From the NCBI GenBank assembly GCA_033442325.1, contig JAWQFM010000004.1:1622316-1686315 (forward strand): DNA of 64,000 nt, written 5' to 3'. The notes under the pieces are model-generated. The model was not told the origin of the DNA and ran no database searches. It saw only the letters and a program-made list of their open reading frames with translations. The DNA is from Salpingoeca rosetta (Eukaryota; Protista; Choanoflagellata). Both the position numbers and the translations under genes were made by a program. Below, one piece after another: positions 21,056 through 60,289 of the stretch (positions are counted from its first letter, which is position 1; every line of letters begins with the position of its first letter).

Positions 21056-24000
21056 CTGCCTCCCCTCACCTGTCTCACCTTTCTCATTCTTTTCACATCC
21101 TGTTTTACCCCTCTCCCCCCTCCCAACTCCCCACCATGTAGGCACCCTTTGCACTCAGTTTGTGGCGACTGATCGACCGCCTCACACCCGACAGCAAGAA
21201 GAAGAAGAAGAAGAAGAAGAAGGCACAAACACAGGCATCGGAGCAGAACGATGGCAGCGCCGACGACAGCGATGGCGCCGCGCATGCCAAGCGTAAGCCA
21301 GATGATGAGAAGGCGGAGAAGCGCCGCAAGGCGTTCCCTGCGTTGGCCATCCCCGACAAGAAGGCGCCAGACCTCAACGACCCAGAGGCAGAAGCCAAGG
21401 ATAAGCAAATCGCGCTGGAAGCCCTGGACCGCCTGGAGTCGTTCCTCTCTTCCTCCAAGACGGCCGGCGCTGATCACGATGCGCCGCCACCAGAGGACGT
21501 GGACGCGGTGCACCCAGAACGCCGCCACCTCACCCAGACACGCGACGCACCCCGCGATCGCAGCCGTGATCGTGGCCGTGATCGTGGCAGTCGTCGCTCG
21601 CGTTCGCGCTCGCGTTCCCCTGGTGGTCGCGGCCGCCATCGCCGCAGCCGTCGGTCCCGTACGCGCTCCCGCTCCCGCACACGCTCGCCCGACCGGGACG
21701 ATCTCGGTCGCCGCCGCCGCCCGCGCCGCAGGCGATGGGACGACTATGACGACGACACCAGAGACACTGACCGCGACCACCGCGATCGCCGGCACCGCAG
21801 GAGCAGGAGCAGGAGCAGGGACCGTGGCCGCCACCACGACCGCGACCACCGTGACCGCCGCGCAGGCGGTGATGAGGACCCGGAGCCCGTGCAGGGGAAG
21901 GTGTACGAGGGCAAGGTGACGGGCATCATGCAGTACGGGTGTTTTGTGTCGCTGCTCGGCGTGCGCGGCAGGCCAGACGGCATGGTGCACGTGAGCAACA
22001 TGAGCCCGACCGGCGCGCACGTGGCAGACCCCAACGACGTGGTGAAGCGCGGGCAGACGGTGTATGTCAAGGTGCAGTCCCGCATCAACAACAAGATCAG
22101 CCTGACGATGAAGGACATTGACCAGTCCACCGGCGAGGACGTTGCCGCCGCTCGCCGAGCACCGCTGCTCCCACAGCCGGGCGGCGCAGCATCAGCATCG
22201 GCATCAGCGCCAGGACCGCAAGCACCACCGGGTGCCGGTGTTGGCGGGGCGATGAACCCGCCCGTTGGTGGGCAGAACCCGGACAAGCCGCGCGGCCACG
22301 AGGTGTTTATTCCCGAGGAGACGGGCCCCGCGCGCGCTAAGAAGCGGCTGACGTCGCCGGAGAAGTGGGAGCTGAAGCAGCTGATTGCGGCGGGTGTGAT
22401 TGACCCGACGGAACACCCTGACTACGACGAGGAGACGGGCCTGCTGCCCCAGGACGACGGCGGTGACGAGGAGCTGGAGATTGAGCTGGTGGAGGAGGAG
22501 CCCGCCTTCCTCTCCGGGCAGACGCGCAACGTCGACCTGTCCCCCGTGCGCATTGTGAAGAACCCTGACGGCTCGCTGCAGCGCGCGGCCCTGACGCAAG
22601 CCGAGCTGGTGCGCGAGCGCCGCGAGCTGCGCAATGCCAAGCGCGAGGCGGAGGAGCAGGCGGACGACCGCGTCATGGACCAGGACTGGCACGACCCGAT
22701 GAAGGCCGGCAACCGCGTGGAGGCGTCGCGCGGGCGGCTGGAGCACCGCGACATGCCCGAGTGGAAGCGGGCAACCATTGGCGGCAAGGCGGTGTCGTTT
22801 GGCAAGAAGACGGACAAGTCGATGGAGGAGCAACGCAGGTCGCTGCCCATCTTCCAGCTCAAGAGCGAGCTCATGCAGGCCGTGCACGACCACCAGGTGC
22901 TGATTGTGATTGGCGAGACGGGCTCTGGCAAGACCACGCAGATGACGCAGTACATCTACGAGATGGGGTACGGCAAGAAGGGCCGCATCGGGTGCACGCA
23001 GCCGCGCCGCGTGGCCGCCATGTCCGTTGCCAAGCGCGTGAGCGAGGAGTTTGGCTGCCGCCTGGGCGCGGAGGTGGGCTACACCATCCGTTTTGAGGAC
23101 TGCACCAGCCCGGAGACGCGCATCAAGTACATGACGGACGGCATGCTGCTGCGCGAGTGCCTGATTGACTCTGCGATGAGCGCGTACTCCGTCATCATCC
23201 TGGACGAGGCGCACGAGCGCACCATCCACACGGACGTGCTGTTTGGCCTGCTGAAGAAGGCGGTGCTGGAACGGCCCAACGACCTCAAGCTCATTGTCAC
23301 CTCCGCCACGCTCGACTCTGAGAAGTTTTCCGAGTACTTTTTCGAAGCGCCCATCTTCACCATCCCCGGGCGCACGTTCCCCGTGACGACGCTGTACACC
23401 AAGGACCCGGAGACGGACTACCTCGACGCCGCGCTCATCACCATCATGCAGATCCACCTGACGGAGCCCCCGGGCGACATTCTGCTGTTCCTCACGGGCC
23501 AGGAGGAGATTGACACGGCGTGCGAGATTCTGTACGAGCGCATGAAGGCGCTTGGCAAGGACATGCCCGAGCTGCTGATCCTGCCCGTGTACTCTGCGCT
23601 GCCGAGCGAGATGCAGACGCGCATCTTCGAGCCGGCGCCGCCGGGCGGCCGTAAGGTCGTCATTGCCACCAACATTGCGGAGACGTCGCTCACCATCGAC
23701 GGCATCTACTACGTGGTGGACCCCGGGTTTGTGAAGCAGAAGGTGTACAACTCCAAGACGGGCATGGACTCGCTGGTGGTGACGCCCATCTCGCAGCAGC
23801 AGGCGAACCAGCGGTCTGGGCGCGCCGGGCGTACGGGTCCCGGAAAGTGCTACCGGCTGTACACGGAGCGCGCGTACCGCGAAGAGATGCTGGAGACGGC
23901 GGTGCCCGAGATTCAGCGCACCAACCTGGCCAACACGGTGCTGTCGCTCAAGGCGATGGGCATCAACGACCTTCTGTCGTTTGACTTCATGGACGCGCCG

Positions 24001-24828
24001 CCCACGGAGACGCTCATCCTGGCCCTGGACAACCTGCACTCGCTCGGGGCGCTGGACGACGAGGGCCTGCTGACGCGGTTGGGCCGGCGCATGGCCGAGT
24101 TCCCGCTGGAGCCGCAGCTGTCGAAGATGCTCATCCAGTCCACGCACCTGGGCTGCAGCGACGAGATTCTGACCATTGTGTCGATGCTGTCCGTGCAGGG
24201 CGTGTTCTACCGCCCGAAGGAGAAGGCTGCGCTGGCCGACCAGCGCAAGGCCAAGTTTCACCAGATGGAGGGCGACCACCTCACGCTGCTGCAGGTGTAC
24301 CGCTCGTGGGAGAACAACAAGTGCTCCAACCCGTGGTGCTACGAGAACTTCATCCACGCGCGGTCGCTGCGTCGCGCGCAGGACGTGCGCAAGCAGATGA
24401 TTGGCATCATGGACCGGCACAAGCTGGACATTGTGTCCTGCGGGCGCAACTTCAAGCGCGTGCAGATGGCCATCACGTCCGGCTTCTTCCGCAACGCCGC
24501 CAAGAAGGACCCGACGGAGGGCTACAAGACGCTTGTTGACCAGCAGCAGGTGTACATCCACCCGAGCAGCTCGCTGTGGAACCGGCAACCGGAGTGGCTG
24601 GTGTACCACGAGGTTGCGGTCACCACCAAGGAGTACATGCGCACCGTGACGACCATCGACCCCAAGTGGCTGGTGGAGTTTGCGCCCGCCTTCTTCAAGG
24701 TTGCCGATCCCACGCGCATGAGCAAGCGCAAGGCCAACGAGCGCATTGAGCCGCTGTACAACAAGTACGAGGAGCCCGACGCCTGGCGCATCTCCAGGAC
24801 CCGCAGGCGCGCAAAGAAGCGCGTCTAG
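20517..24828 (+). CDS. DHX8: Pre-mRNA splicing DEAH helicase Prp22/DHX8 (exons 20517-20610, 20831-20916, 21142-24828)
   Basis: N-terminal [16 protein letters not shown]-rich region, S1 domain ([15 protein letters not shown]), [37 protein letters not shown]-terminal [17 protein letters not shown]. Confidence 0.97.
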
Positions 24829-54031: not shown

Positions 54032-54346
54032 TCACTCATCACCACCATCATCATCACCACCACCATCATCACCACCATCATCATCACCATCACCATCACC
54101 TTCGTCCATGGCTTGCCCGAGTCGCATACCAACACCGCCGCGGCCGATGGGAATGCGCGCTGCAATGGGCTCTGTGATGCCGTTGCGGTGCCCAACACCG
54201 CGCCCCTCCCGCCACCCGAGCTTGCGAAGCACTGCAATCGTGATGGCGCCGTGTTTGGGTGGGGTGAGTGGGGTGTACAAGTGGACCGTGTTTGAGTAAA
54301 ACCACGGAGCGTGAAACAGCAGAAGACAGCGCGCTTCCAACACACA

Positions 54347-54386
<40 letters not shown>

Positions 54387-54419
54387 ATCACACACACACA
54401 CCATCACACACACACACCA

Positions 54420-54452
<33 letters not shown>

Positions 54453-55612
54453 ATCACACACACACACACACACACACACACTGANNNNNNNNNNNNNNNN
54501 NNNNNNNNNNNNNNNNNNNNNNNNNNNNNNNNNNNNNNNNNNNNNNNNNNNNNNNNNNNNNNNNNNNNNNNNNNNNNNNNNNNNACACACACACACACAC
54601 ACACTGACGTTGGTAGCCGATGTTGGTGTCGTCGATGGGCTCGGCAGACTGCGCAACCACGTCGCCCTCAAAGTACTCGCTGTCGTACGCGCTGTAGTCG
54701 AGATGATATCCAGATGAGTCGTGCTGCTGCTCCAACTGCCCATCACCTTCATCGTGGCCGTTGCACTGGCCATCATCGTCACCGCCATCGCCTGCGTTTG
54801 CATCATAGTCGTCACCGTAGCCGTAATCACCGTCGTCATCATAGTACTCGCCGCTCTCGTCGTCGTTCTCGCCCCCGCCGCCATAACCATCGTAGCCATC
54901 GCCATCATAGCCGTGGCCATAGTGGTCACCATACTCTTCTTCACCATGTTCATCGTCGTACTGCCCTCCTTCGTACTGCCCTTCTTCATAATACTCTTCC
55001 TCATTCTGCTCTTCGTTCACATCACCACCACCATCATCATCACCACCATCACCACCAGCCTGCTGCTCGCTCTCGTCATGCCCACCCTGGTGCCACCCGC
55101 CAGCCCCGGCCGTTGTCAGGCCGCCAAACACAAACCCTCGCGAGCGCGTGTTGCGCGGAAACGCCCACTCCGCCCCCGACGCAACCCCAATCCGCGCCGC
55201 CGCGTGCTGCCTCGTGTGCACACCCTGATCACCCTCACCCTCGCCCCCACCCTCACCATCACCGTTTGCACCCTCACCATTTGCAGCGGCAGTCAGTAGC
55301 GGCTGTGGGTCGCTCGGGTCGCGCGCACACCCGAGCGCGTCGTACAGCTCGAGGTCGCCGTGCGGGTCGCAGTACGCGCGCGCATACACGCGACGGGCGC
55401 GGGGGAACGCAATGCGAGCGTCGCGAAGAAAGTACGCAAGCTGTGACCGCAGCGTGCGCAGTTTCTGGTACTGCTTGGGGCTCCCATGTACGCGCTTCAC
55501 CTGCACAACAAGCACGTCAAACGCCGCATACGAAGCGTTTTCGTGTTGCCGCTTGCAGCTTTGTTGGCGAGGAGATGCGTTGTTCTTCTGTTGCTTCTTC
55601 TTCGGTGTGTTG

Positions 55613-55671
<59 letters not shown>

Positions 55672-57638
55672 AAGTGAACTGTCAGTGCAGTTGTGATCGC
55701 GACCGCCGTCGTTGCTGCTGCTACCGTTCCTGCTCGTGTTCTCGCTTGCCATATGGCCTGAACTAGTACCGCTTACTCCACCAGCATCACCAGCATCAAT
55801 GTGTCTGTCGTCAACGACTCCTGCTCCTCTGTCACCAGCATCAATGTCTCTGCCATCACCAGCGCCACCGTGTTCCTCCATGCAGGCCACTGACTCCCTG
55901 GTTCCGGTTGCCTCCGTCTTGTCCGCTGGTGTGCTGTTGATGCCGGCCCTGCAGACGGGGCGAATCAGCACCACGTCGCCCTTGCCGTACCCGCGCAGCT
56001 GCTGCACGCCCACGTAGTCGCGTGTCCACATCCTCCACCCACACGTGACAAAGTGCGTCACAACCTTGCGCACGAGCCAGTCGTGTGGCTGCAGGTCCCA
56101 CGTCTTGCCGCGCAAATACGTGTACAGCACCTCGTGCCGATGCAGCAGGGTCGCCACCGTCTTGCACACATCAGCCGCCACGTCGCTGTTCCCTGCCTTT
56201 GCAGTGCTGTCGGCCGCAGTGGTGGCAGTGGTGGCTGTGGGAGGTCCGTCAAGAGGGGCTTCCGTGCTCACTTCCGGTGGGGTATGCACGCGCTCCCGGT
56301 GAGCTGTGTTGGTGCTGTGCTCGAGTGACTGGACGTCTTCTTTGTCTTGCTTGTCTTCTGTGTCTTGCTTGTCTTGCTTGTCTTGCTTGTCGTGCTGGTC
56401 TTGCTTGGGGTCTTCACCCTGTTGCTTCCGTTGTTGTTGCTGTTGCCTGTGCTGTTGCTGGTGTGTGTCGACTGCAGCGCCCCACTTACCCCATCCACTA
56501 CTGGTTCCAACAGCTGCCACGTGCGACACGTCTGGCGCTGGTGCATGTACACCCCACGCGGCCGTGGCGCTGCCTGTCGAGGCTGGTTTCGCTGCCGACG
56601 CTGCACTGTTCGCGGGTGCGGTGGCAGCTGCTTTGGTGGTCGTTACCGCGCCGCTGCTACCCGTGCCTGCCCGTGCGTCCGTCCATGCCAGGTGCACGGG
56701 ATACACCACTCGCGAGCGCTTGGTGGCGGGCCGGCCATCTTCGCTTGCTCGCACCGTCTCTGCTGATGACGCAGATGTTGACGGCGTGGAACGCGCCGTT
56801 GCCGTCGACTCGCCCCAGTTGTTTGCATATGTGCACGGCGCGTCCTTGATGGTGCCCATATCCACCTCGCACTTCTGCCACGCACGCTGCTCCCTGATCA
56901 AGAACAATACAGCGATGGACGCAACCAAAACACGAACCATGCATGTGGAAAAGAGAGTTGCGTTCAATACATGCGGGCACGTGCACTTCACGACACTCAG
57001 AGCAGCAGCAAGATAAGCGGTGAGCCTGTGCCAATACATGGCCTCTCATGCCCTCTCGTGGCCTCGTAACGAACACGCATGCAGTGTCGACAAGCGTGGA
57101 CGCGAGCCTCCACAGAACTCACTGTTCTTCACGGCGAAGCCCAACGTAGATGGACGCCTCCTCCACCACCTGTCGATGAGTTAGGACGCGCAAGGCAGCG
57201 CCGTCGTGCTAGCACAGGTGGAGATGCGGGAGCAATGTGATTTTGAAATGAGGTCTTTGTCGAAAGGAAAACTTGGCAAGGCGAACAAGGGTGCCAAACT
57301 CGGCTCACCAAACAGCGTAGGGGCTGCACACTTGCTCACCGCAAAGCTAGAGGATGCAGCCTGTTCAGCGGCCTCGCGGGAGCTGAACTGAAGCAAGCAC
57401 AACCCTAGGGTAAGGCAGGAGGGAGAGAACGTAGGAAAACGGAATGGAAGACGTGGCAAAAGGCCAGCGCGAGGACATGAGAATGCGGGAGGGGGGGCAG
57501 CAAGAAGAAGGTGTGGAAGGAATTCGTGAACACCCGCGCACGGAAGCGACTGACCTTTGTTGGCGTAGAAGCGAAAGGACCGCCCACGCCACACCACAAA
57601 GATGCGCGCCCCCTTGACGCCAGCGTTCTTCAGCGTGG

Positions 57639-57725
<87 letters not shown>

Positions 57726-58014
57726 GGGGGGGGGTTGTGTTGCGGCGTGTTGTGTTGGGTGGGCATACATTGTGTTTGCACAGAAAGGAAAGCACAGGAA
57801 GTGAGTACAGAGAGGAAGCGCCGGCGCGACAAGTGAGCAAGAAAGCACAGAGGTCACGAAGCAGACATAGACACACACGCATGCTCGCACACGCGCACGC
57901 ACTCGCACTCACATTGATGGTGGAGAGGCGCGGCTGGGGTTCCATGAACCCCGTGAGGATGAGCGAGCGCTCATCCAACTCGGGTCCACAGCCACCACCA
58001 CCACTGCTCGACAT
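54032..58014 (-). CDS. RRM + split PD-(D/E)XK-like domain + Tyr/Gly/acidic tract + C-terminal G-patch protein (6 exons)
   Basis: Spliced RRM: SLILTGF (RNP2-like) ... NKGLCLLQFSSREAAEQA (RNP1-like) ... SIYVG. Large exon 56893-54609. The G-patch spans the last intron: PIDDTNIGYQLLRKLGWREGRGVGHRNGITEPI...GRGGVG. Stop at 54032. Confidence 0.8.
54485..54584. other. Assembly gap (100 N) inside the G-patch intron
   Basis: N run; the exons on either side join in phase. Confidence 0.99.
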
Positions 58015-58435: not shown

Positions 58436-60289
58436 TCAACCGCAAAAGGCTGAGAGCTGGCGCTTGGCGTCAGCTGCTGTTGGGCGCTGGTGAGGGTCTT
58501 GCTGCCAGAACTCGCGAATGCACGCACGTAGCTCCTCCGGGGTATCCTCGAAAGGCAGCCGCTGCCCGCCCAAGACGTACTTCTTGATGGTGACGGCCGA
58601 CTTGCCAAAGTAGGGCTCCTCCTCCTCATACAGCTCCCAGAGCACAACGGAAAAGGAGTAGATGTCGCACGCGCACCAGGCCGCCAGGTCGTCGTCGGTC
58701 ACCTCCTCAGCAAACACCTCCGGCGCAGCGTTGCTCGGGGTTCCCACGAAGATTGCACCGCCCTGCACGGACGTTGTTGTGGAGTGGACTTGATTCTTGA
58801 GCTGGACAAACCCAAAGTCGCACAGCTTCACGGAAACTGACTGCGGGTCCTTGTTGAAGCGCTGCACGAGGAAGTTTCGGGACTTGAGGTCGCGATGAGC
58901 AATGTCGTTGCCGTGCAGGAATGCGATGGCGGAGATCATCTGCATGGTTGCCACGTTCTTGTGCTGCACCGTCAGGCTCTCCCCATCCTCGACGCCGTGC
59001 AGCTGGTCCCACAGGCTGCCACCGGACATGAACTCCATGACGATGCCCATGCGGCTGCGGTCGCGTTCCACATAGCCAAACACGCCGATGATGTTGGGGT
59101 GCTTGAGCCTGTTCAGCGTGGCAAACTCGCGAACAAAAGCCTTCTTTCGCGTCTTGCCTTCCACAGACAACACCTTCACTGCGACGGGCGTGCTGTCGTA
59201 CGTGCCGGCATACACTTCACCAAACGCGCCCGTACCAATCGGCTTGTCCCGCAATGTCACGCGGTCAGCAGGGATCTGCGCTTGCCCTGCTTGGTGCTCA
59301 AGGTCGTCCGCAGACCTGCGCGAGAGCGAGGCAGGCAGGGGCGGTGCTGTTGTTGTTGCTTCTGTCGTAGTTGTTGCTGTGGTCTGCGATGACAAGGTGG
59401 AGTCTTCCATCTCCTGGGCAAACTGCTGACGCTCCAGGGTTTGGCGTTGATACTCGTCGGCCCACTGGTCGCAGGTGTCGAACTGCGGTGGAGTCCTGGG
59501 CCGCAGGTCTTCGTCGCGCTCCCCGCGCTGTGCTCGCTTGAGTGCGTGGTAGAGGGCCAGCCGATCTGGCAGGGGCATGTCACTGCCCTTCATCTCCTTC
59601 TGGAACTCGTTCCACGAGTTGACCTTGCGAGGTTTCGAGGAGGGTGGCTTGAGGCCCGCAACTGCCGCCGACAGCCCCGTTGACGATGCTGCCTGCTCCT
59701 GTGCCCTTTCCTTGCGATACATCACGGACAGCTCGGTTACACTGTGTCCGTCGCCCTTGTGGGCGGCAAGGAATCTGTGCCAGGGGTTCTTGGTAGGCGT
59801 GCTGCTGGAAGCCGGGGAGGTGGTGGATTGCTGCAAACGAGCCGCGCTCGAGGATGCCGCCTTCTCCGCCTGGTACATTGAGGACATCTGTGCCGGGCTG
59901 AGGTGATGGCCCTTGTGCGCCGCGCGAAACTCGTGCCATGCGTTGCCACTGGAGGGGGTGGATGAAGTGGACGGAGTTGACGGAGTGGATGGCGCTTTGT
60001 ACGAGCCGCTCGCTGGCACCGAGGATGAGGAGGATGCCGCCTTCTCCGCCTGGTACATTGAGGACATCTGTGCCGGGCTGAGGTGATGGCCCTTGTGCGC
60101 AGACCGAAACGCGTTCCACGCGTTGCCACTGGAAGGAGTGGATGGCGCACCATACGAGAAGCTGGGCGCGGAGTAGCTCGCGGGCGGTGGGGCTGACGCC
60201 TTTTGCGCCTGGTACATTGAGGACATCTGCGCCGCGCTCAGGCCTTGGCCCTTGTGCGCAGAGCGAAACTCGTTCCAGTTCCTTGGCAT
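58436..60289 (-). CDS. Intronless TKL-group Ser/Thr kinase with five N-terminal ~28-aa W-x-x-F / HKG / Y repeats
   Basis: GTGAFGEV, VAVK, HRDLKSRN, DFG, GTPSNAAPE, DIYSFSVVLWEL, RPT. Repeat consensus NxWxxFxxAHKGxxLSxxQMSxMYxxxK. Confidence 0.9.
   Translation of the reverse strand: MPRNWNEFRSAHKGQGLSAAQMSSMYQAQKASAPPPASYSAPSFSYGAPSTPSSGNAWNAFRSAHKGHHLSPAQMSSMYQAEKAASSSSSVPASGSYKAPSTPSTPSTSSTPSSGNAWHEFRAAHKGHHLSPAQMSSMYQAEKAASSSAARLQQSTTSPASSSTPTKNPWHRFLAAHKGDGHSVTELSVMYRKERAQEQAASSTGLSAAVAGLKPPSSKPRKVNSWNEFQKEMKGSDMPLPDRLALYHALKRAQRGERDEDLRPRTPPQFDTCDQWADEYQRQTLERQQFAQEMEDSTLSSQTTATTTTEATTTAPPLPASLSRRSADDLEHQAGQAQIPADRVTLRDKPIGTGAFGEVYAGTYDSTPVAVKVLSVEGKTRKKAFVREFATLNRLKHPNIIGVFGYVERDRSRMGIVMEFMSGGSLWDQLHGVEDGESLTVQHKNVATMQMISAIAFLHGNDIAHRDLKSRNFLVQRFNKDPQSVSVKLCDFGFVQLKNQVHSTTTSVQGGAIFVGTPSNAAPEVFAEEVTDDDLAAWCACDIYSFSVVLWELYEEEEPYFGKSAVTIKKYVLGGQRLPFEDTPEELRACIREFWQQDPHQRPTAADAKRQLSAFCG

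Follow-up and report, generated by a model that had tools for sequence, protein, structure and literature searches.

Can a protein that recruits an RNA helicase also carry, in the same chain, the fold of a nuclease? G-patch proteins are the on-switches and address labels of DEAH-box RNA helicases and, in the cases known to us in which a nuclease is involved with a G-patch protein, that nuclease is a separate protein (XRN2 with NKRF, Nob1 with Pfa1). The question is raised by a gene on a stretch of 64,000 nucleotides (nt) from the choanoflagellate Salpingoeca rosetta (contig JAWQFM010000004.1, positions 1,622,316 to 1,686,315 of the forward strand). We will refer to the whole stretch as "the window", position 1 being its first letter. 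A preliminary description of the gene, made from the DNA letters, had proposed an RNA recognition motif (RRM), a restriction-endonuclease fold interrupted by a long insert, and a G-patch, all in one product. The reading that we favor, by a modest degree of confidence, is that the gene encodes a lineage-restricted G-patch helicase cofactor with a nuclease-fold module, which would hold a substrate and probably cut it in a manner coupled to the helicase.

The locus is one transcribed gene of six exons on the minus strand, extending from 58014 to 54032 and encoding a protein of 940 amino acids (aa); the spliced coding sequence of 2823 nt is translated with zero internal stops (Table 1). The gene was rebuilt on the minus strand from splice-site motifs and was then checked against public RNA data, the CAG and KQD repeats being skipped in the mapping of reads. 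A single spliced contig of RNA run X4 joins exons 5, 4, 3, and 2 at 56892/57122, 57208/57340, and 57403/57554, and all three joints have minus-strand GT..AG ends. The 141-nt loose end of this contig past 57639 opens with the last bases of exon 1 in reverse complement and extends 39 nt upstream of the ATG at 58014; furthermore, the start of the gene is aligned with the start of its orthologue in another choanoflagellate, Barroeca monosierra. At the other end of the gene, 11 raw RNA reads (run X21) and one X4 contig pass directly from position 54609 to 54231 and on through the opening 30 bases of exon 6. Since these reads join 54609 to 54231, the run of N in the assembly (54485-54584) lies inside intron 5 and leaves the reading frame unaffected. 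Exon 5 is covered by RNA read depth except over the skipped CAG repeat.

It is extremely improbable that the locus is not one gene, that is, that separate transcripts carry the exons of the RRM-like domain, the long exon 5 and the exon of the G-patch, or that the frame is an artefact of the gap. No single RNA contig spans the whole mRNA, as such a division would lead one to expect, but interruptions are limited to the CAG and KQD repeats, the contigs overlap or abut except across the skipped repeat, all five introns (including the one that holds the gap) are bridged by spliced RNA, and a full-length orthologue with an identical domain order exists. The preliminary description had presented a single gene with this architecture and had suggested RNA sequencing as a check for separate genes: no split was found. 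Its exon layout also stands, apart from the acceptor of exon 4, for which its model implies 57169 and which the RNA joint places at 57208; the correction adds 13 in-frame residues, with which the alignment to the Barroeca protein is gapless.

Regarding the strand, first mates lie almost all on the plus strand in RNA run X20 and less cleanly so in X21, where the bin 55921-56022 is even between strands. Such an orientation is what a minus-strand RNA would give in libraries of the usual stranded type, as we assume these to be. Antisense depth is present at 56329-56430 in both runs; antisense-oriented reads and foreign loose ends accumulate there, probably originating from similar repeats elsewhere. 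In addition, one X4 RNA contig (depth 8.1) jumps 215 nt within the KQD/CAAGAC repeat, between 56297 and 56513. This joint was considered as an intron and rejected, given that its GT..AG lies on the plus strand (the wrong polarity), that its length cannot be divided by three and that it falls in a repeat; the repeat was probably collapsed when this run was assembled. Long (CA)n/(GT)n microsatellites take up introns 1 and 5, at 57640-57720 and 54232-54608, respectively.

Table 1. Coordinates of the G-patch gene and of the features of its product within the window (residue numbers are those of the 940-aa protein).
Feature	Position	Strand	Remarks
Exon 1	57913..58014	-	Start codon ATG (58014); putative strand 1 of the RRM-like domain
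Exon 2	57555..57639	-	Joint 57403/57554 and loose end at 57639 in the X4 spliced contig
Exon 3	57340..57404	-	RNP1-like segment KGLCLLQF; joints 57208/57340 and 57403/57554
Exon 4	57123..57208	-	Corrected acceptor 57208; joints 57208/57340 and 56892/57122
Exon 5	54609..56893	-	Linkers, split nuclease-fold domain, acidic Gly/Asp/Tyr-rich tail; open frame
Intron 5	54232..54608	-	GT...AG, 377 nt, largely (GT)n; holds the assembly gap 54485-54584
Exon 6	54032..54231	-	Rest of the G-patch (about 54125-54231), acidic tail, stop codon
RRM-like domain (residues about 16-113)	57123..57969	-	Spans exons 1-4 and the introns between them; conservation with the Barroeca orthologue
Middle domain, N-half (residues 350-430)	55942..56184	-	Predicted two helices, strands 1 and 2 (AlphaFold2 model); conserved in both orthologues
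Low-complexity insert	55546..55941	-	About 130-140 aa including poly-Gln; predicted strand 2/strand 3 hairpin; not conserved
Middle domain, C-half (residues 563-642)	55306..55545	-	Predicted strand 3, long helix, strands 4 and 5 (model); conserved
His383-Asp384	56080..56085	-	Invariant in three of three sequences; N-terminus of the predicted core helix; candidate first metal ligand
Asp419	55975..55977	-	Invariant; first residue of predicted strand 2 ("PD" position)
Gln577-Val-Lys579	55495..55503	-	Invariant Q-x-K on predicted strand 3; Q 55503-55501, K 55497-55495
Motif S..EW..P.....GFV.G	55120..55191	-	After the middle domain; aligned in all three sequences

The C-terminal G-patch is the only match of the whole protein in Pfam. 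Exon 6 alone matches PF01585 with 26.8 bits (E 5e-6, with a cut-off of 22), the scan of the species' own genome gives 29.1 bits at 54125-54232, and the unsplit G-patch of the Barroeca protein gives 26.9 bits (4.6e-6). Once spliced, the domain presents all the conserved glycines, plus an aromatic residue after the second of them; the splitting of the G-patch by an intron, as first described, agrees with the RNA reads across intron 5. Characterized G-patch proteins dock on and activate DEAH-box RNA helicases, as in the complex of DHX15 with the NKRF G-patch. The S. rosetta genome contains at least nine DEAH/RHA OB-fold matches, so that potential helicase partners exist.

The window itself holds a DHX8/Prp22 orthologue at 21160-24828 on the plus strand, an intronless frame of 1222 aa with S1, DEAD, Helicase_C, HA2, and OB_NTP_bind domains, which scores 1554 bits to human DHX8 and is the top DEAH OB-fold match genome-wide. 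It lies about 29 kb from the G-patch gene, a closeness to be expected in about 1 of 100 cases with about nine such genes in 55 Mb, as calculated post hoc. The proximity was rejected as evidence of linkage, since a gene distance of 29 kb means little in a eukaryote.

The distribution of the gene is very restricted. An exhaustive HMMER search of 1.84 billion representative proteins returned two relatives only: the Barroeca orthologue (P0002, 822 aa, EukProt) and a 339-aa gene call (P0001) on a 2.9-kb metagenome scaffold of TARA Oceans. The Barroeca protein is alike from end to end, with the N-terminal domain, two short linear motifs, the middle domain, a third motif and the C-terminal G-patch. 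On the TARA scaffold the middle domain is followed by an intron at the matching site of the G-patch and then by the G-patch exon; this intron (about 1050-1180 of the scaffold) occupies the identical codon position and also contains a GT repeat. Word-index protein searches with the N-half of the middle domain, the Barroeca middle domain, and the Barroeca N-terminus as queries yielded no further relatives, nor did scans of metagenome and viral contigs with the domain alignment. In the own genome (55.4 Mb, 68 contigs) there is no paralogue of the middle domain, the other matches all falling in the low-complexity insert. The gene family is very narrow and seems confined to a few choanoflagellates, and its architecture is new: no description of a G-patch combined with this fold was found in the literature, in line with the earlier statement that no described protein has this architecture, and the same layout was met only in the Barroeca orthologue. 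Besides the motif included in Table 1, the motifs PCTY..WGEST and KR.R..P.H.AW (about 56796-56834 and about 56692-56724, respectively) lie outside the domains and are conserved with Barroeca. The three short linear motifs could act as docking motifs.

Between the N-terminal domain and the G-patch lies the region on which the proposal depends, a middle domain of about 150 aa that is basic (isoelectric point about 9) in an otherwise very acidic protein. Two halves separated by an insert of about 140 aa had been proposed, and they are found at the positions claimed; they are more than a chance pattern, because they are conserved in the two orthologues. Nearly all of the 63 invariant columns of the three-way alignment fall in the two halves, and almost none in the insert. 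The insert, placed between collinear halves and unalignable, measures about 22 aa in the TARA sequence, about 70 aa in Barroeca, and about 140 aa in the window. Orthologue conservation, which the preliminary description had named as a check, is strong for both halves in the two relatives, with the proposed catalytic Asp, Gln, and Lys invariant in three of three sequences. In contigs of runs X1 (probably DNA) and X4 (RNA-derived), 26 substitutions and an in-frame insertion of 3 nt set part of the insert (about 55823-55880) apart from the assembly, which is either strain or allele variation or a local reference error; variation between runs matches what is expected of an unconstrained loop. Raw RNA reads end loose at 55829 and 55880.

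The folding of the two halves was addressed with two predictors. AlphaFold2, with the short-insert orthologue as target and the three-sequence alignment, gave a model (m5c025c05d002) with a predicted local distance difference test (pLDDT) of 66.8 and a predicted template modeling score (pTM) of 0.67. Its elements are a leading helix, a core helix (32-44), a short strand (47-48), a strand at 67-74, a low-confidence loop, a strand at 95-106, a helix at 110-133 and two further strands (139-148 and 151-156). A single-sequence AlphaFold2 run on the 314-aa piece of the window protein, insert included, reached a pLDDT of 38.8 and was not used for the fold search. On the other hand, ESMFold2 was given the N-half and the C-half of the window protein as separate chains and no alignments, and returned a median interaction score (ipSAE) of 0.57 (0.49, 0.69, and 0.57), compared with 0.00 in each of three controls; at least 64% of the contacts were common to the runs and the partner pLDDT was at least 61. 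In the calibration of this score, 51 of 78 solved complexes attained the mark, as did 2 of 108 mismatched pairs, and values up to 0.60 count as weak, so that the tool grades the result "weak support". The prior for the halves packing together was already high, because both pieces come from one protein and co-vary in presence. On these models the two halves, whose co-folding had been anticipated, form one domain with a variable, disordered loop in the strand 2/3 hairpin.

What fold this domain has was approached by aligning the AlphaFold2 model exhaustively to 48,161 representatives of the Protein Data Bank (PDB), with a tool for which Z values below 8 are middling and can reflect a common arrangement. 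The best matches were Hjc 1ob8 (Z 6.8, root mean square deviation (rmsd) 3.6, 96 aligned), 1gef (Z 6.7) and 2wcw (Z 6.2), accompanied by XisH (Z 6.4), the restriction-like endonuclease of the R2 retrotransposon (Z 6.0), AF1548 (Z 6.0), and NucS (Z 5.7), with the NucS/EndoMS entries 2vld and 5gkj at Z 6.0-6.2. Lower in the list stand the Sen15 and EndA tRNA-splicing endonuclease subunits, a Cas4-family protein, SdaI, PaqCI, McrC, VRR-NUC, bunyavirus cap-snatching endonucleases, and the endonuclease-like domain of Prp8. The top structural matches are nearly all members of the PD-(D/E)xK superfamily, with Z 5.0-6.8, and the realigned Foldseek list is alike. The best Foldseek match was XisH (E 0.05, probability 0.82), and none had E < 0.001. 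In the ESM Atlas the matches were PDDEXK_9 (template modeling (TM) score 0.56), YraN, XisH, and Cas4/PDDEXK_1 (TM range 0.43-0.56); a Foldseek search of BFVD brought up nothing but weak matches, among which UL24, resolvase, and VRR-NUC proteins were enriched. ESM sequence features of the window piece offered weak leads at 0.81-0.85 (among them MunI and AHJR-like), to be taken as leads only.

No single one of these scores is convincing, and the fold is accepted because the superfamily is near-uniform across three structural searches and because of the order of the elements. In this sense, the middle domain very probably adopts, as modeled, a restriction-endonuclease-like fold; the fold named in the preliminary description is the one that heads the lists, at Z values of only 5 to 6.8. 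A lineage-specific alpha/beta domain of another or a new fold, with a three-layer arrangement and a D...QxK pattern that arose by chance, is an improbable alternative: it could be argued from the low pLDDT of a model built on three sequences, from the failure of the single-sequence model, from a top Z within the middling range of the tool, and from the E value of the best Foldseek match, but it would have to accommodate top rows that belong nearly all to one superfamily in the exhaustive PDB, PDB Foldseek, and ESM Atlas searches, a second predictor that also packs the halves together, and an element order and placement of invariant polar residues that follow the superfamily pattern. We regard the middle domain as a new, divergent family of the PD-(D/E)xK fold, by sequence a member of no described nuclease family.

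With this fold, the invariant residues of Table 1 would outline a candidate active site. In model numbering, His31-Asp32 opens the core helix, Asp67 starts strand 2, and Gln102-x-Lys104 lies near the end of strand 3; the position of the His-Asp pair in the core helix is presumably the place of the first Glu of Hjc-type enzymes. Residue correspondence to solved nucleases was derived from the element order and the aligned ranges, and the strand register suggests that Asp67 is opposite Gln102-x-Lys104 in the antiparallel hairpin 67-74/95-106. The alignment to the La Crosse endonuclease starts at model residue 29 and chain residue 32, and we would guess from these ranges that the invariant His corresponds to the metal-binding His of that enzyme. 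The codon coordinates first given for Asp, Gln, and Lys are exact, and the three residues are invariant in all three sequences. The interpretation of QxK as the Mrr-type variant of ExK is borne out by the literature, in which BisI/Esp638I-type enzymes are described by "E---D-X(12)-QxK similar to E. coli Mrr" (PMC4926085) and Type ISP enzymes by "PD-QXK instead of PD-EXK" (PMC3874165). Catalytic competence is plausible on the model and, given the fold, activity would have somewhat less than an even chance.

The N-terminal domain has the beta-alpha-beta-beta-alpha-beta look of an RRM and, judged from its sequence, is likely to be RRM-like. An hhalign comparison with a profile of 15 RRMs of the same genome gave a local match from RNP1 to alpha2 (score 20.5, P 0.0026, probability 11.6%), and this score was reached by none of 150 column-shuffled queries (mean 10.6, maximum 16.1). 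The named neighbors in ESM features belong only to RRM-clan families (0.80-0.87) and are leads only. The domain may be a protein-binding rather than an RNA-binding variant; a UHM-type RRM (U2AF homology motif) was considered and rejected, as the Arg-x-Phe motif is absent.

Putting these parts together, the G-patch would dock on and switch on a DEAH-box RNA helicase, by analogy most likely the DHX15/Prp43 orthologue. The nuclease-fold domain, aided by the RRM-like domain, would hold a structured RNA or RNA:DNA substrate and, if the model is right, would probably cut it via an Mrr-like D...QxK metal site, with unwinding and cleavage coupled within one complex. The roles put forward in the preliminary description (RNA surveillance, R-loop processing or retroelement defence) are speculative.

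Several points count against this picture. In none of the three sequences does the middle region have a Pfam match, even at E 10, scans of this region with PHROGs and PADLOC give low-complexity noise only, and PDB sequence and profile searches give poly-Gln or short chance matches only. That the domain would be hidden from standard searches had been correctly foreseen, but the insert is not the reason that had been supposed, because the natural short-insert orthologue is equally without a Pfam, PHROG, PADLOC, or PDB sequence match. The structural scores are middling, with Z not above 6.8, the fold model was built from three sequences and is of moderate confidence, and inactive members of the fold are among the matches (the Prp8 endonuclease-like domain 6zym_A, Z 5.1; Sen15 2gw6, Z 5.6). 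Furthermore, the canonical Glu of ExK is replaced by Gln, and the invariance of the four residues is weak evidence of catalysis, because about 38% of the domain columns are invariant. As to the N-terminal domain, residues 20-150 of the Barroeca protein have no Pfam match at E 10, and the RNP1-like KGLCLLQF and RNP2-like LILTGF have Leu/Ile at the aromatic positions, where RNP1 and RNP2 of canonical RRMs carry Phe/Tyr. Of the RRM encoded by four small exons in the preliminary description, the exons and the likeness hold, and a recognized RRM does not.

The replacement of Glu by Gln, together with the lack of a sequence relation to any active family, the scores of the non-catalytic Sen15 and Prp8 domains, which nearly equal those of active members, and a disordered loop of 22 to 140 aa adjoining the putative site, would also suit a pseudo-nuclease adaptor. 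The PD-(D/E)xK fold would then cut nothing and would serve as the nucleic-acid- or protein-binding module of a G-patch cofactor, specific to the lineage, that would guide a DEAH helicase to a target. We consider such an adaptor possible and yet unlikely: H/D, D, Q, and K are invariant at canonical positions, QxK is reported for Mrr-like domains of the BisI/Esp638I-type and Type ISP families (PMC4926085; PMC3874165), and the best matches, Hjc and NucS, are active resolvases and repair nucleases. Equally doubtful is the boldest form of the proposal, namely that this protein is a nuclease in its own right, the first among G-patch proteins, with an active Mrr-like (H/D...D...QxK) endonuclease site for RNA or R-loops, and that it forms a self-contained unwind-and-cut machine, invented in a small choanoflagellate clade from a fold without a detectable sequence ancestor.

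Should the preferred reading of a helicase cofactor with a nuclease-fold module be true, the fusion of a G-patch with a nuclease-fold domain would be evidence that a single chain can have both helicase activation and cleavage built into it, and it would offer a simple system for helicase-nuclease coupling in a genetically tractable relative of animals. Even without activity, the domain would add a new case in which RNA machinery has taken over a nuclease fold for binding. More generally, sequence-family searches can fail to see a nuclease-fold domain that has a long low-complexity loop and has diverged fast, and an old fold can be housed in a gene of restricted lineage.

Immediately upstream of the G-patch gene, and also on the minus strand, lies a gene at 58436-60289 whose product of 617 aa contains repeats of the unit "W..F...HKG...S..E.S.MY" and ends in a protein kinase domain.

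Among known systems, the closest in structure are Hjc and NucS/EndoMS, which provide the best matches and share the element order (helix, three strands, helix, strand), an acidic residue in the first core helix, an Asp at the start of strand 2, and an x-K on strand 3. Unlike them, the S. rosetta domain has Gln before the Lys, His-Asp in place of the helix Glu, and a long disordered loop between strands 2 and 3, and it is part of a eukaryotic multidomain protein of RNA type, whereas theirs are small stand-alone DNA enzymes without detectable sequence similarity to it. With no Pfam match, and with residues H/D-D-Q-K instead of the E-D-E-K tetrad of Hjc, the domain falls outside the Hjc family, and the likeness is one of fold only. 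The D...QxK active-site configuration is shared with the Mrr-like PD-QxK domains of E. coli Mrr, Type ISP and BisI/Esp638I-type enzymes (PMC3874165; PMC4926085). These are bacterial DNA restriction enzymes with a D-X(10-12)-QxK spacing, whereas here the insert stretches the spacing to 34 to about 157 residues, and no Pfam Mrr_cat match was obtained.

Two further groups share the fold and bring it into contact with RNA. The cap-snatching endonucleases of bunyavirus L and influenza PA are PD-(D/E)xK folds acting on RNA that match the model with Z 5.3-6.0 (7oro_A: Z 6.0, rmsd 3.0, 90 aligned), and their metal-binding His could correspond, on aligned ranges only, to the invariant His of the core helix; in contrast to the present domain they come from viruses, are set in a different structural context and show no similarity in sequence. 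Within the eukaryotic RNA-processing machinery, the same fold class is represented by the Prp8 endonuclease-like domain, Sen15, and Sen54, but these have lost the catalytic residues, whereas D, Q, and K are kept here.

With respect to the remaining architecture, RBM5, RBM10, and RBM17/SPF45 are splicing regulators that likewise combine an RRM-type domain with a G-patch in one protein; unlike the S. rosetta protein, they have canonical RRMs or UHMs seen by Pfam and no nuclease-fold domain, and protein searches gave no sequence relation to them. The nearest functional parallels are NKRF, with DHX15 and XRN2, and yeast Pfa1/Sqs1, with Prp43 and Nob1, which are G-patch cofactors linking a DEAH helicase to a nuclease in trans. 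As would be the case here, a G-patch protein with nucleic-acid-binding domains unites a DEAH helicase with RNA cleavage; their nuclease, however, is a separate polypeptide of another fold, whereas in S. rosetta the nuclease-fold domain, as predicted, is fused to the G-patch itself.

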